This document shows positions 16,542 through 63,480 of a stretch of 64,000 nucleotides of DNA, in pieces. The position numbers and the translations under genes were made by a program. Positions within the stretch are counted from its first letter, which is position 1. Each line of letters begins with the position of its first letter. Location: sequence record PP712906.1; one strand, 5' to 3'. The notes beneath the pieces are model-generated. The model was not told the DNA's origin, ran no database searches, and was given only the letters and a program-made list of their open reading frames with translations.

Positions 16542-16652
16542 TGTGAAATAAATCACGAAAAAGTAGTTTTCGGGTATTGACAATAACACATCAATACCCG
16601 ATAATAAACACATCAAGACGAGATACGAACTACTTAAAGAGAGAACATTATG
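16542..16652 (+). promoter_or_regulatory. early promoter with an upstream CRP-like site
   Basis: TGTGA-N6-TCACG 16542-16557; TTGACA 16577-16582; GATAAT 16600-16605; CATCAAGACGA 16611-16621. Confidence 0.7.
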
Positions 16653-17474
16653 ACAATCACTAAAGCAGAAATGAAAGCAATCGCACTTGATCTAATGAGC
16701 GGTAACAATCTAATGCAACGCGATTTGATTGCTGAAGGTTGGTCTTTCGAATTCTCAACTCGCAAAGCTGCACTTGGTGACTGTAACTACCGTACTAAAG
16801 TACTACGTCTTTCTGAAGTGTACTTGAATGCTCGTACTAAAGAAGAGCAAATCAACACAATCACTCACGAAATGGCTCACGCAATCGCGTACACTGATTT
16901 CAACGAACGTGGTCATGGTGCTATCTGGAAGCGTGTGCATCGTCAACTAGGCGGTACTGCTGAACGTTGTTCAACTGTTTCAAACCCTGAAGCCGTAGAC
17001 AGCAAGTACGTTGTTTTCTTCGAAAACGCTCAGGGTGAACTAGAAGTAGTTCAAAAAATGGATCGCATGACTAAGCGTTTTCAACCAGTACACATCAAGT
17101 CTCTATACTTGAAAGGTCGCAAAGCTGAAACTGAAGGTCAACTTCGTTGTGTTTCTTCAGCGACGTTCAAAGCTATCAAAGCTGATTTAGAAGCTAAAAA
17201 AGCTGATAACGCTGAAGCAGCAAAACCAGTTGAACCAGTTGCACCTAAAGCTAAGAAAACTGAAACACCTAAGCCTGCTAAGAAAGTTTCAGCACGCGGT
17301 CAAGCTGCTCGTGACGCAATCGCAGAAATCGTGATGACTACTACTCACAAAGGTTGCAAGTCAGTGTCTTTCGAACAGCGTGGTAAATACAAAGACTGGT
17401 ACATCATGATTGAACTAGAAGCTCACACAATCGAACAGCGTCTAGATACTTTCAAAAAGAAACACAGTTTGTAA
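16650..17474 (+). CDS. SprT-like zinc metalloprotease
   Basis: LGDCNY..LRLS..TITHEMAHA..GHGAIWK; Pro/Lys-rich linker and a small C-terminal domain. Confidence 0.88.
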   Translation: MTITKAEMKAIALDLMSGNNLMQRDLIAEGWSFEFSTRKAALGDCNYRTKVLRLSEVYLNARTKEEQINTITHEMAHAIAYTDFNERGHGAIWKRVHRQLGGTAERCSTVSNPEAVDSKYVVFFENAQGELEVVQKMDRMTKRFQPVHIKSLYLKGRKAETEGQLRCVSSATFKAIKADLEAKKADNAEAAKPVEPVAPKAKKTETPKPAKKVSARGQAARDAIAEIVMTTTHKGCKSVSFEQRGKYKDWYIMIELEAHTIEQRLDTFKKKHSL

Positions 17475-17484
17475 TCTCTCAATT

Positions 17485-17505
17485 AGCCCCGAAAGGGGCT
17501 TTTTT
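17485..17505 (+). terminator. rho-independent terminator
   Basis: AGCCCC-GAAA-GGGGCT TTTTT. Confidence 0.88.
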
Positions 17506-17510
17506 AGGTT

Positions 17511-17580
17511 TGAGGCGGAAAAATTCCGTCTCATCTTAGTAGAATTAGTGCTTTTAGTGATATTAGAAGTATTAGTAAGA
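17511..17580. repeat. hairpin plus 9-bp-period TTAG array (copy 1)
   Basis: TTAG at 17536, 17545, 17554, 17563, 17572 after TGAGGCGGAAAAATTCCGTCTCA. Confidence 0.85.
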
Positions 17581-17631
17581 TTTGTTTAACAAACACCTTG
17601 ACAGCCGTATAATACACGTCGAGGTGATGAA

Positions 17632-17871
17632 ATGATAACGATATACACAATTCCTAACTGTGACGGTTGTCGTCACGCTATCGCCCTCTGTAAGTTCAAA
17701 CACGTTCCGTATACTGTAATCGAGTTACAGTCGCAGACTGACATCGACCAATTACATCAAAAGCTTGGTGATAATCGCAACATTCGCGTTCCTCTTGCTA
17801 TGCATGGTGACACATACATCGGTCACCTGCCTGAATTGAAGAAATGGGTTGATGAACAGACGTATAAATAA
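17632..17871 (+). CDS. glutaredoxin-like protein
   Basis: ITIYTIPNCDGC CxxC motif, VP motif, YIG. Confidence 0.9.
   Translation: MITIYTIPNCDGCRHAIALCKFKHVPYTVIELQSQTDIDQLHQKLGDNRNIRVPLAMHGDTYIGHLPELKKWVDEQTYK
17863..17870 (+). promoter_or_regulatory. T4-type late promoter
   Basis: Exact TATAAATA upstream of the capsid-like gene. Confidence 0.85.
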
Positions 17872-47076: not shown

Positions 47077-47357
47077 TGGGATTTGAAACAAAAATTATCT
47101 GCTATGCAGCGCACGTAACTGAATTTGAGCCAGGATGGGGAACTCGACCAGATGGTTACATCATTGCCAAGACTGAAGCTGATGTTCTGGCAAAAGGCGA
47201 GCACATGCGAGAGATCGCTAAACAATCCAAACACGGCTATGAGTATATCGGTGAAGTCTTTAAGTTCGAACCGACTCAGAAAGCTATTGATGAATTAACC
47301 GACCGTGACTATATCTGGACTGGTCGAAACTTTGATGAATGGGGTACTGTACTATGA
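47076..47357 (+). CDS. hypothetical protein
   Basis: TAATG coupling; EFEPGWGTRPDG motif. Confidence 0.7.
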   Translation: MGFETKIICYAAHVTEFEPGWGTRPDGYIIAKTEADVLAKGEHMREIAKQSKHGYEYIGEVFKFEPTQKAIDELTDRDYIWTGRNFDEWGTVL

Positions 47358-61661: not shown

Positions 61662-62210
61662 ATGGCATTTATGAAAAAAGAGAAAGACGCAAAAGACATT
61701 ACCGAAGCAGATATGCAGTACGCAATTGCAGTACAAAGCGTATGGATTCACAAACGCTACACAGCGATTATTCCAAACTGTTACACCAAATGGGATAATG
61801 AAGCTGATCTGTTTGCTATTCGTCCAAGTGGTCTTTGTGATGAGATTGAAATCAAAGTATCCAAAGCTGATTTTCGAATTGATGAACAAAAATCCGTTAA
61901 GGTCATCGACGAAAGTACGCCAAATTTACGTTGGCATCGTTATGAAGACGTTCCAAAACGCACAGCATTGCAAGATGGTAAAATGTCGAACTACTTCTGG
62001 TATGCATTCCCTAAAGGGCTTGTAGACCACTCTGAAGTCCCAGAATGGGCTGGTATAATCGAAGTGGATGGATTTCTGAACGCCAGAGAAGTAAGAATGC
62101 CTAAACGTCTGCATGGCGGTAAGATGACAATCGAAGAACAGCTAAAGCAAATCAAGAAACTTGGATATCGCTTCTGGAATCTGGTTAAAAAGAACAAAAA
62201 GGAACAGTGA
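61662..62210 (+). CDS. MmcB-like PD-(D/E)xK nuclease-fold protein
   Basis: EADLFAI..DEIEIKVSKADFRID; NYFWYAFP; AGII. Confidence 0.8.
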   Translation: MAFMKKEKDAKDITEADMQYAIAVQSVWIHKRYTAIIPNCYTKWDNEADLFAIRPSGLCDEIEIKVSKADFRIDEQKSVKVIDESTPNLRWHRYEDVPKRTALQDGKMSNYFWYAFPKGLVDHSEVPEWAGIIEVDGFLNAREVRMPKRLHGGKMTIEEQLKQIKKLGYRFWNLVKKNKKEQ

Positions 62211-62283
62211 GGCGGAAAAATTCCGCATCATCTTAGTAGAATTAGTAGTTTTAGTGAAGTTAGAGATATTAGTAGTATTAGGA
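62208..62283. repeat. hairpin plus 9-bp-period TTAG array (copy 2)
   Basis: TTAG at 62233, 62242, 62251, 62260, 62269, 62278 after TGAGGCGGAAAAATTCCGCATCA. Confidence 0.85.
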
Positions 62284-62321
62284 GATTGAAAATGACTTGA
62301 AAAAGTTGTTGACAGTCTCCT

Positions 62322-62350
62322 TTTTTGATCGTACTATACAGTCCTTGAAA
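62322..62350 (+). promoter_or_regulatory. sigma70-type early promoter
   Basis: TTGACA-N17-TACTAT upstream of the ArdA-like gene. Confidence 0.75.
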
Positions 62351-62371
62351 CAAATTATGTGAGTGAAGACT

Positions 62372-62899
62372 ATGAGCTTGAGTGAACGTGAAGAAGAGCT
62401 AAAAGCATTAGCTATCGACCATGTGTGTGACGATGAAGTTGCTGTCACCGTTTCATGCGCTGGTATGAGTAATTACTACACTGTTTGCCCGTCAGAGTTC
62501 AAAGACTTTTTGGACAACCATGAGGGAACATCTTATGTAGCATTTGAATGGCACAACATCCCAGACGATTTACAAGATGAAGAACTAGACTTCGATGGTC
62601 TACTTGCTTGGTTCAATCTAGATGAACATGAGCGTGAAATCTGCGAAGCATTGTATGATAATAACGTTTGTATGTCATACGAAGATGCAGCCGAGAAAGT
62701 CAGTGACTGTTGGGTTTTTGAAGGCACGAGCGAAGACTATGCAAGACATGTAACGTCTGAATTAATGGGCATTCGCTTAGAAGATATGCCTGTCATTGTA
62801 AGCAGCAACATCAACTGGGGTGATGTATTCATCGACCTTGACGCAGAAGGTAGTATCTACGAAATTGGTCGCGACAAATACTTAACAGTACACGGTTAA
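62372..62899 (+). CDS. ArdA-like antirestriction (DNA-mimic) protein
   Basis: Strongly acidic; FEWHNIP, EDYARHV, DMP..VSSNINWGDVFIDL resemble ArdA motifs. Confidence 0.62.
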   Translation: MSLSEREEELKALAIDHVCDDEVAVTVSCAGMSNYYTVCPSEFKDFLDNHEGTSYVAFEWHNIPDDLQDEELDFDGLLAWFNLDEHEREICEALYDNNVCMSYEDAAEKVSDCWVFEGTSEDYARHVTSELMGIRLEDMPVIVSSNINWGDVFIDLDAEGSIYEIGRDKYLTVHG

Positions 62900-62901
62900 A
62901 A

Positions 62902-63480
62902 ATGAGTAGCACAAAAGGTAACGTTAACAAAGACGATTACTACGCTACGCCAGACTGGATTGTTGAAGAGTTTCTTGAAAATTTCGAGAGACGGATACAC
63001 ACAACTCATCATTTGAGTATGCCTGCTATGCATGTTCTTGACCCATCATGTGGTGGTTGTTCTGAACACAAAGCAGCATATCCAGTAGCTTACAAGAAAT
63101 TGTATCATGTCGATATTGACACAATGGATATTCGTGAAGACAGTCACGCGCAAATTATCGCGAACTATCTCGAAACTGATGTTCAGAAGAATCATTACGA
63201 CATGATCATGACGAACCCGCCGTTCAGCTTATCAGTTGATTTTGCTGAGAAAGCACTGAGCGAAATCAAGAACGGTGGTTATGTCGTCATGCTACAGCGT
63301 CTGAACTGGCTAGGTAGTATCAAAAGAAAGCCTTTCTGGGACACAATGCCCCTGAGAGCAGTGATGGTTCACCATCGTCGACCATCATTCCATGGTACAA
63401 AAGGCACAGACTCGATTGAGTACGCGCACTTTGTATTTCAAAAAGGTTACGCAGGTAAAGCAGAGATTATAGTAATATGA
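62902..63480 (+). CDS. DNA N6-adenine (amino) methyltransferase
   Basis: DDYYATP, VLDPSCG, TNPPFS. Confidence 0.9.
   Translation: MSSTKGNVNKDDYYATPDWIVEEFLENFERRIHTTHHLSMPAMHVLDPSCGGCSEHKAAYPVAYKKLYHVDIDTMDIREDSHAQIIANYLETDVQKNHYDMIMTNPPFSLSVDFAEKALSEIKNGGYVVMLQRLNWLGSIKRKPFWDTMPLRAVMVHHRRPSFHGTKGTDSIEYAHFVFQKGYAGKAEIIVI

Follow-up and report, generated by a model that had tools for sequence, protein, structure and literature searches.

Among T4-type phages, origins of replication have been defined experimentally for T4 alone, in which at least five of them, one at uvsY, are dispersed over the genome and share no common motif (PMC3016281). Infected cells also replicate plasmids with a T4 origin, or with nothing more than homology to T4 DNA, and the middle promoters of T4 are laid out as an activator site in the -30 region followed by a sigma-70-type -10 element (PMC3016281). 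KVP40-like phages possess AsiA and have no recognisable MotA (PMC1524935). With a module that is shared and can be recognised, the use of origins, or else a regulatory step that is missing, would become open to direct tests in the broad-host-range Vibrio phages, a large group of ecological importance.

We analysed such a module in a window, that is, the whole stretch of 64 kb examined here, which matches at 100% identity the Vibrio phage TCU-VP03-AIR1 (PP712906.1; Schizotequatrovirus, KVP40-like, T4-type) and constitutes the final 64 kb of that record (record position minus 181585 gives window position). The module, a hairpin followed by TTAG words at an exact pitch of 9 bp, resembles the R-loop origins oriF and oriG of T4 in its overall design: it spans ~100 bp, with a conserved site that would lie about 30 bp 5' of a putative start, a putative -10-like hexamer and then an A+T-rich, easily melted stretch, it occurs as several dispersed copies whose orientation follows local transcription, and one copy lies directly 5' of uvsY, just 3' of the 34/35 tail-fibre genes. 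It differs from them in that the putative -30 site is a palindrome and not a MotA box, and in its exact 9-bp TTAG period, which is unreported for the unwinding elements of T4. Furthermore, T4 origins are motif-less among themselves, whereas the six copies in TCU-VP03-AIR1 are near-identical, which counts against reading them as origins.

The preliminary description of this locus had invoked T4 oriE, a comparison that holds for the presence of repeats, yet the likeness is loose and the layout is nearer to oriF/oriG. As in T4 oriE and in plasmid iterons, the repeats are short, direct and even, non-coding and syntenic in relatives, and their role in T4 is likewise unproven. However, the unit is here 9 bp with four fixed bases, as opposed to 12 nt in T4 and 17-22 bp in plasmids, the module occupies six loci instead of one, and a hairpin stands beside the array. 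A second likeness drawn at the time, to the sub-helical direct repeats in the sites of Xis, Cox and BldC, is borne out by the exact 9-bp pitch over 5-7 units. Sites of P2 Cox, lambda Xis and BldC share with the module five to seven direct repeats at no more than about one helical turn, next to promoters, while the exactness of the pitch, the adjoining hairpin and the six dispersed copies set it apart.

Finally, PeSL (Arbiol 2010; Comeau 2014) are, like the module, repeated intergenic elements of the same phage group, namely cassettes of a terminator stem-loop directly 5' of a strong sigma-70-like early promoter, which evolve in concert, are recombinogenic and go along with indels. The module is distinguished from them as an extra ~90 bp between terminator and promoter that keeps its identity where either is missing, and as an occupant of six fixed loci without hyperplastic clustering; a TTAG array is absent from the PeSL description (PMC4122927). 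No description of the module was found in the literature on PeSL, on five T4-like genomes, on Schizotequatrovirus (2025), on satellites and in reviews of T4 replication, a scope to which the KVP40 genome paper (PMC180978) did not belong.

We propose, with a probability of roughly 0.35, that the module may be a cis-acting site at which replication starts or its machinery is loaded, with T4 ori(uvsY)/ori(34) as the closest parallel in design. The module itself is real, non-random and conserved, and we infer its function from sequence; its six-fold genome-wide architecture and its capture by bacterial islands raise the finding above a lone hairpin-plus-repeat.

Anatomy of the module and of its six copies

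Upstream of copy 1 stands a SprT-like gene (16650-17474); the first gene on its 3' side is an nrdH-type glutaredoxin gene (17632-17871, + strand), after which genes 24 and 55 follow. Downstream of the predicted intrinsic terminator of the SprT-like gene (17485-17506, +), the hairpin or palindrome (17511-17533, +) forms ten pairs around the loop AAA and folds at exactly these bounds with both RNA and DNA parameters. It leads through the 5-base linker TCATC (17531-17535, +), invariant or nearly so among copies, into an array of five 9-bp units (17536-17580, +), each opened by TTAG (starts at 17536, 17545, 17554, 17563 and 17572). Hairpin, terminator and TTAG words all lie where the preliminary description had placed them. 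The sigma-70-type, promoter-like site that it had reported after the array is also present, but the register TTAACA-16-TATAAT (17586-17613, +; 11 of 12 matches; serving the glutaredoxin gene) fits better than the proposed GTTTAA-N18-TATAAT. Within unit 1, the hexamer TAGAAT (17540-17545, +) is, judging from column counts, a possible -10 element. The strand bias and AT-richness ascribed to the array are found as well: copy 1 is 78% A+T with a single C, and the six arrays of the genome together hold 2 C in 306 bases, compared with 20.5% C genome-wide. Runs of four TTAG at 9-bp pitch occur five times in the window, every one inside its two arrays, where shuffles (n = 100) expect 0.00, and the exact hairpin core occurs twice.

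We also considered the array as a mini-ORF and rejected this, as the open frame has no start codon and is not constant relative to the upstream ORFs, and most differences among copies would be non-synonymous. Two ORFs antisense to arrays, the annotated ORF237 (a 66-aa 'hypothetical protein', record 128425-128625, - strand) that crosses the wac copy and a 43-aa ORF (window 17572-17703, - strand) that overlaps copy 1, are probably not genes.

The earlier label 'copy 1' was apt: the window has a second copy (62207-62286), and the rest of the genome a further four. The hairpin of copy 2 (62207-62231, +) overlaps the stop codon of a 182-aa ORF upstream, and its array (62233-62286, +) comprises six 9-bp units. 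On its 3' side follow a sigma-70-type promoter, TTGACA-17-TACTAT (62309-62337, +), an acidic 178-aa ORF (62363-62899, +), a context also given by the orthologue in phage 1.081.O, and a DNA methyltransferase-like ORF of 192 aa (62902-63480). The very acidic protein and the methyltransferase-like protein (62363-63480) could form an anti-restriction/methylase pair.

A scan of the whole record places the first TTAG of the six copies at record positions 47339 (+), 102507 (-), 128519 (+), 156638 (-), 199121 (+; copy 1) and 243818 (+; copy 2). All coordinate scans were run on consecutive, unaltered stretches of PP712906.1 and MG592456.1 that were joined, with nothing repaired, averaged or designed. 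Every copy has the orientation of the genes on either side. An intrinsic terminator precedes four of the six and a stop codon directly precedes the other two; a sigma-70-like promoter follows in five, at a distance between the last unit and the -35 element that ranges from 13 to 31 bp. The exception is the copy at a lipoprotein-like gene, where the array merges into a Shine-Dalgarno sequence and ATG, with no promoter before the start codon. The genes on the 3' side (lipoprotein, gene 1 (dNMP kinase), wac (fibritin), uvsY, nrdH, and the acidic with the methyltransferase-like ORF) are mutually unrelated, and no initiator was recognised among the genes beside the six copies.

The conserved stretch runs from a GCGAAGC box or from the hairpin to the final TTAG unit and measures ~70-105 bp, which fits the ~100-bp size of a minimal T4-type origin. 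The box containing GCGAAGC stands 12-20 nt 5' of the hairpin in most copies (record 47295, 102553 and 128474). GAA-loop mini-hairpin words of this kind 5' of the main hairpin comprise GCGAAGC, which is known as a DNA mini-hairpin of unusual stability, and in the islands described below also CCGAAGG (L071:8815-8845). As a genome-wide signal the GCGAAGCG box was rejected, its remaining occurrences being dispersed within coding DNA.

Gaps between neighbouring copies measure 26-55 kb, and the copies are spaced more evenly than six random points on a circle (P = 0.0064 for the minimal gap and 0.0033 for the standard deviation of the gaps, with a test picked after the positions were known). The module might instead be a packaging recognition site, with its 9-bp words wrapped round the ring of the small terminase subunit and island copies carried for packaging, an explanation that we regard as very improbable. 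About 9 bp per subunit would be geometrically plausible on such a ring, and it is common for a satellite to have taken over its helper's pac or cos site. However, six copies are unexpected for a pac site, none of them adjoins the terminase genes (the closest lies ~5.7 kb upstream), and packaging of the T4 type is regarded as independent of sequence.

Five of the six arrays are 74-78% A+T. Computed with nearest-neighbour values, the stability of the 54-bp duplex is ~3.5 standard deviations below the genome mean, and five of the six copies fall among the least stable 0.05-0.11% of the genome's 54-bp windows (copy 1 within 0.11%); other A+T-rich intergenic stretches are equally unstable, so the arrays are not unique in this respect. 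A hand estimate with nearest-neighbour values gave the RNA:DNA hybrid no clear advantage over the duplex.

Conservation in KVP40-like phages

The preliminary description had proposed to search the whole genome and its relatives; beyond the six copies in TCU-VP03-AIR1, this found the same loci occupied in relatives. With 161 bp as query, a sensitive BLAST search recovers the module in Vibrio phages only, in 51 records; complete KVP40-like genomes carry it in six places each and incomplete records in fewer, and the four outlying records that we checked are all Schizotequatrovirus. In IMG/VR, KVP40 and VH7D were the only matches. Phage 1.081.O, the most divergent member, has seven copies in its whole genome on the identical six syntenic loci, five of them 5' of uvsY, gene 1, wac, nrdH and the methylase operon, the sixth directly against the start codon of the lipoprotein gene. 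At its gene 1 locus (L066:7103-7413), the whole module with the upstream box is tandemly duplicated, 164 bp apart. As to a host origin of the motif, two scans with one genome per bacterial species returned no true family member.

Among 28 distinct copies, the five-A/TT core of the hairpin, the TCATC linker and all TTAG words are invariant or nearly so. The TTAG of unit 5 is found in 28 of 28 copies at all four bases and that of unit 6 is likewise 100% conserved, neither being imposed by the search pattern, while the spacer columns carry only ~1.0-1.5 bits. No copy has an indel between the hairpin loop and unit 2, and the unit count varies from 5 to 7 solely by steps of 9 bp. The columns of the TAGAAT hexamer hold T in 28, A in 25, G in 26, A or T in 28, A in 27 and T in 28 of the 28 copies. 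Conservation of this kind suggests that TTAG is recognised at a fixed pitch of 9 bp; the module is a conserved cis element and more than an A+T-rich spacer.

The hairpin, too, shows signs of constraint. In an alignment of 26 sequences, 89.7% of cells are paired, as against 37-54% when the partners are slid by 1-3 columns, and in three copies two pairs are flipped from G-C to C-G. As one event, propagated by gene conversion, might account for this compensatory change, a folded structure is moderately supported over a protein-bound palindrome. An independent consensus fold recovers the first hairpin alone. As RNA, single arrays fold into long imperfect hairpins through UUAG:UUAG wobble pairs (z-scores down to -5.7; 17536-17580 and 62233-62286), and a conserved second RNA hairpin within the array, which we considered, is supported neither by the consensus fold nor by DNA parameters. 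Rfam gave no match in the window at the gathering score, and near the site permissive thresholds gave hits at chance level.

These data bear on whether the module acts as RNA within read-through or intercistronic transcripts, with the hairpin as a stabilising element and the array as an unstructured, C-free UUAG run that would be bound by a protein or cut by an RNase and so govern how the downstream message is translated or decays. The co-orientation of all copies with transcription, the compensatory changes in the hairpin and the fold-back of the array through its UUAG words are in favour of this reading, as are the two copies that directly follow a stop codon without a terminator and the lipoprotein locus, where the final units supply the Shine-Dalgarno sequence and start codon. 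However, four of the six copies are enclosed between a good terminator and a promoter of their own and hence lie outside the main transcripts, and a consensus fold limited to the first hairpin as well as the lack of an Rfam match speak against it; with the island copies described below also arguing to the contrary, we consider an RNA element improbable.

Copies within one genome are closer to one another than to their orthologues in another genome, and one hairpin variant occupies different loci in KVP40 and VH7D, which indicates that the family evolves in concert. At the same time, the six loci are stable across the divergence of the genus; no new insertion sites were seen, and the copies are not concentrated in hyperplastic regions. 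Such findings are relevant to the proposal that the module is a recombination cassette, a dispersed homologous patch akin to PeSL that is kept for modular shuffling. PeSL are indeed documented in nt-1 and KVP40 (PMC4122927), and the likeness within genomes, the locus-shifting hairpin variants and the tandem duplication in 1.081.O speak for such a cassette, as does the fact that mere T4 homology suffices for plasmid replication in infected cells. Yet loci that are stable genus-wide, evenly spaced and outside hyperplastic clusters are not what this proposal predicts, and selection acts specifically on TTAG and its phase, in islands as well, which homology alone would not yield. Altogether, a recombination cassette appears to us quite unlikely. 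The PeSL cassette proper we rejected, as the terminator is found in four and the promoter in five of the six copies, yet the conserved part lies between them, and three loci are in structural or core blocks.

A further explanation is that the array binds a phage transcription regulator, which would assemble head to tail on the TTAG words, in the manner of Cox, Xis or BldC-type proteins, and turn the adjacent promoters on or off at the early-to-middle transition. This would account for TTAG words that are fixed at a sub-helical pitch while spacers and unit number vary, and for the position of five of the six copies just 5' of sigma-70-type promoters; moreover, the AsiA of KVP40 has no known partner. 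Three of the genes downstream of copies, uvsY, gene 1 and nrdH-55, are presumably of the prereplicative kind, judging from T4, and there is a precedent in the helper P2, whose Cox protein, bound to direct repeats, switches on the satellite P4. On the other hand, the variable distance of 13 to 31 bp between array and -35 element is hard to reconcile with such a switch, and so is the lipoprotein copy, which has no promoter before the start codon in KVP40-like phages and in 1.081.O. The hairpin and the even spacing over the genome would be left unexplained, and no candidate protein came to light. We hold this main rival to be possible but on balance unlikely; it is compatible with a role of the module as an origin.

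The module as a candidate replication site

Returning to replication, the preliminary description had left open the choice between an origin, a protein-loading site and a non-coding RNA. Our analysis favours a cis-acting site at the level of DNA (origin and/or protein loading), because there are six even, syntenic and co-oriented copies, because TTAG is fixed and the spacers are not, because duplex stability is low, and because one copy stands 5' of uvsY, the place of oriF in T4, and islands that look phage-dependent have captured the module. The RNA option is weakened.

We suggest the following tentative mechanism. If the TAGAAT-type hexamer of unit 1 were a -10 element, the palindrome would, by our own count of the geometry, be centred in the -30 region relative to the start, and units 2-6 would form the initially transcribed, easily melted stretch. 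The C-poor, A+T-rich 45-63 bp directly 3' of the core would then melt readily and might take up an R-loop, and the TTAG words could serve as contacts for a hypothetical phage protein that polymerises along the array or wraps it. Such a -10 element would account for the absence of any other promoter at the lipoprotein gene, for the co-orientation of the copies with transcription and for the place of one of them 5' of uvsY by the 34/35 genes. As KVP40-like phages have no recognisable MotA, the activator in this scheme is hypothetical. Several observations count against an origin: no -35 element accompanies the putative -10 hexamer of unit 1, other units contain -10-like hexamers too, and easy melting by itself leaves the invariant TTAG at 9-bp pitch unaccounted for. 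A reading of TGCTT in the 5-unit copies as a MotA box was dropped, since it has no -10 element at the proper distance after it and is missing from the other copies.

Module copies in Vibrio chromosomal islands

A metagenome scan yielded six true members of the family, two of them on ordinary phage contigs (wac and nrdH loci). Most other matches were unrelated tandem repeats of the (TTAGTCATC)n type; many metagenome contigs (L022, L026, L032, L037, L060 and others) contain long arrays built from 9-bp units like TTAGTCATC, whose period fits the search pattern by chance. In the remaining four of the six members, the module of 70-90 bp, at 94-97% identity, is all that is common with phages, with no similarity at the protein level. 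Homologues of the ORF 3' of the module in the longest of them (L042) are encoded on chromosomes of V. alginolyticus, V. parahaemolyticus, V. cholerae, V. fluvialis and V. vulnificus, as well as of V. cyclitrophicus, V. splendidus, V. lentus and Photobacterium.

Their genomic context shows an island, an integrated element of ~14 kb that adjoins an M32 carboxypeptidase gene in many Vibrio chromosomes and has a duplicated gene fragment on the far side (example, L067:3313-17250 in Vibrio sp. CP150876.1; relatives, L068-L075, L042 and L035). It encodes a large serine recombinase, an XRE-type HTH protein and a small resolvase and has a slot of variable cargo. Ahead of a Rep-like ORF come 1.2-1.4 kb of non-coding DNA in which iteron-like words and also the module are found. 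Wherever the N-terminus of the Rep-like protein differs, the iteron words differ as well (L067:9630-9770; L071:9484-9554), which would be expected of an initiator matched to its origin. The module is present in the islands of V. sp./alginolyticus (L067-L071), V. cyclitrophicus (L072), V. cholerae (L074) and Photobacterium (L075), flanked by direct repeats of ~125 bp; the V. splendidus island (L073) has no module and one copy of this repeat, not two.

In the island arrays, TTAG opens 49 of 49 units and all 11 columns that vary among six islands are in spacers, while the 5' arm of the hairpin has decayed in several islands whose array is intact. The array is thus the part under selection in islands. 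No sigma-70-like promoter follows the array there, which is unfavourable to a transcription regulator, even though islands could on that reading reuse the array as a sensor of infection. Nor is there an ORF for ~600-900 bp after the module, which, together with decayed hairpins beside intact arrays, argues against an element acting as RNA. The ~125-bp flanking repeats and the island devoid of the module are in line with a recombination cassette, by which the module would permit recombination-dependent replication of the island or co-integration with the phage.

For a site of replication initiation or loading, the islands provide arguments in both directions. Since the T4 machinery replicates plasmids that carry an origin or mere homology, an island would have a motive to possess the module, and islands may have copied it to couple their own DNA to the machinery of the infecting phage. 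However, the iterons and Rep-like gene of their own, the module-less L073 and the decayed hairpins count against an origin.

Further signs of a T4-type partner are found in the islands. In all of those examined, the word TATAAATA, which is the core of T4 late promoters and also precedes wac in KVP40-like phages, lies in a constant position shortly 5' of the small HTH/Rep-like operon (near 9646 in L071 and 9846 in L067; L072:2346, L073:2152, L074:1095 and L075:2153). One variant encodes a homologue of the T4-type sliding clamp (L071:13560-14243, - strand; phrog_223, E = 1e-43; Pfam gp45-slide_C) with 43% identity to gp45 of 1.081.O, and another has instead an AAA+ ATPase with a clamp-loader-like domain (L067:11083-12333). 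Judged by their gene content and motifs, the islands look like candidate satellites or phage-inducible elements tied to T4-type phages.

The closest described element is the PLE of V. cholerae, and the comparison is one of architecture. Both are integrated elements of ~14-18 kb with a large serine recombinase and mostly unknown ORFs, both have non-coding iterons by a Rep-like gene that differs at its N-terminus when the iterons differ, and both carry defence cargo. The islands differ from PLE in their integration site, next to the M32 carboxypeptidase gene, and in that the late-promoter word, the gp45 homologue and the phage module point to a helper of the T4 type, not to ICP1. No description of the islands was found in the literature searched, satellite papers included, and to our knowledge no T4-type phage has a satellite on record. 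The islands point to a phage-parasite or defence relationship, as yet undescribed, in V. parahaemolyticus, V. alginolyticus, V. cholerae and relatives. More broadly, and with considerable reserve, we suggest that KVP40-like phages, unlike T4, may share a sequence-defined origin or loader module that is read by a dedicated factor through the TTAG pitch next to the hairpin, and that the widespread Vibrio islands may be satellites of T4-type phages that plug in via the module, via T4-type late promoters and, in some variants, via a clamp homologue. If this were true, they would be the first known satellites of T4-type phages, none being described in the satellite literature searched. The module also offers a simple sequence marker for phages and islands in genomes and viromes.

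The cargo of L042 (62-1768 and 7461-10041), a contig that also carries the bacterial M32 carboxypeptidase gene, comprises a Thoeris system made up of ThsA (SIR2 and STALD domains) and ThsB (TIR domain), and further a PstI-like restriction-modification pair of a PstI-like endonuclease and an Eco57I-like methylase.
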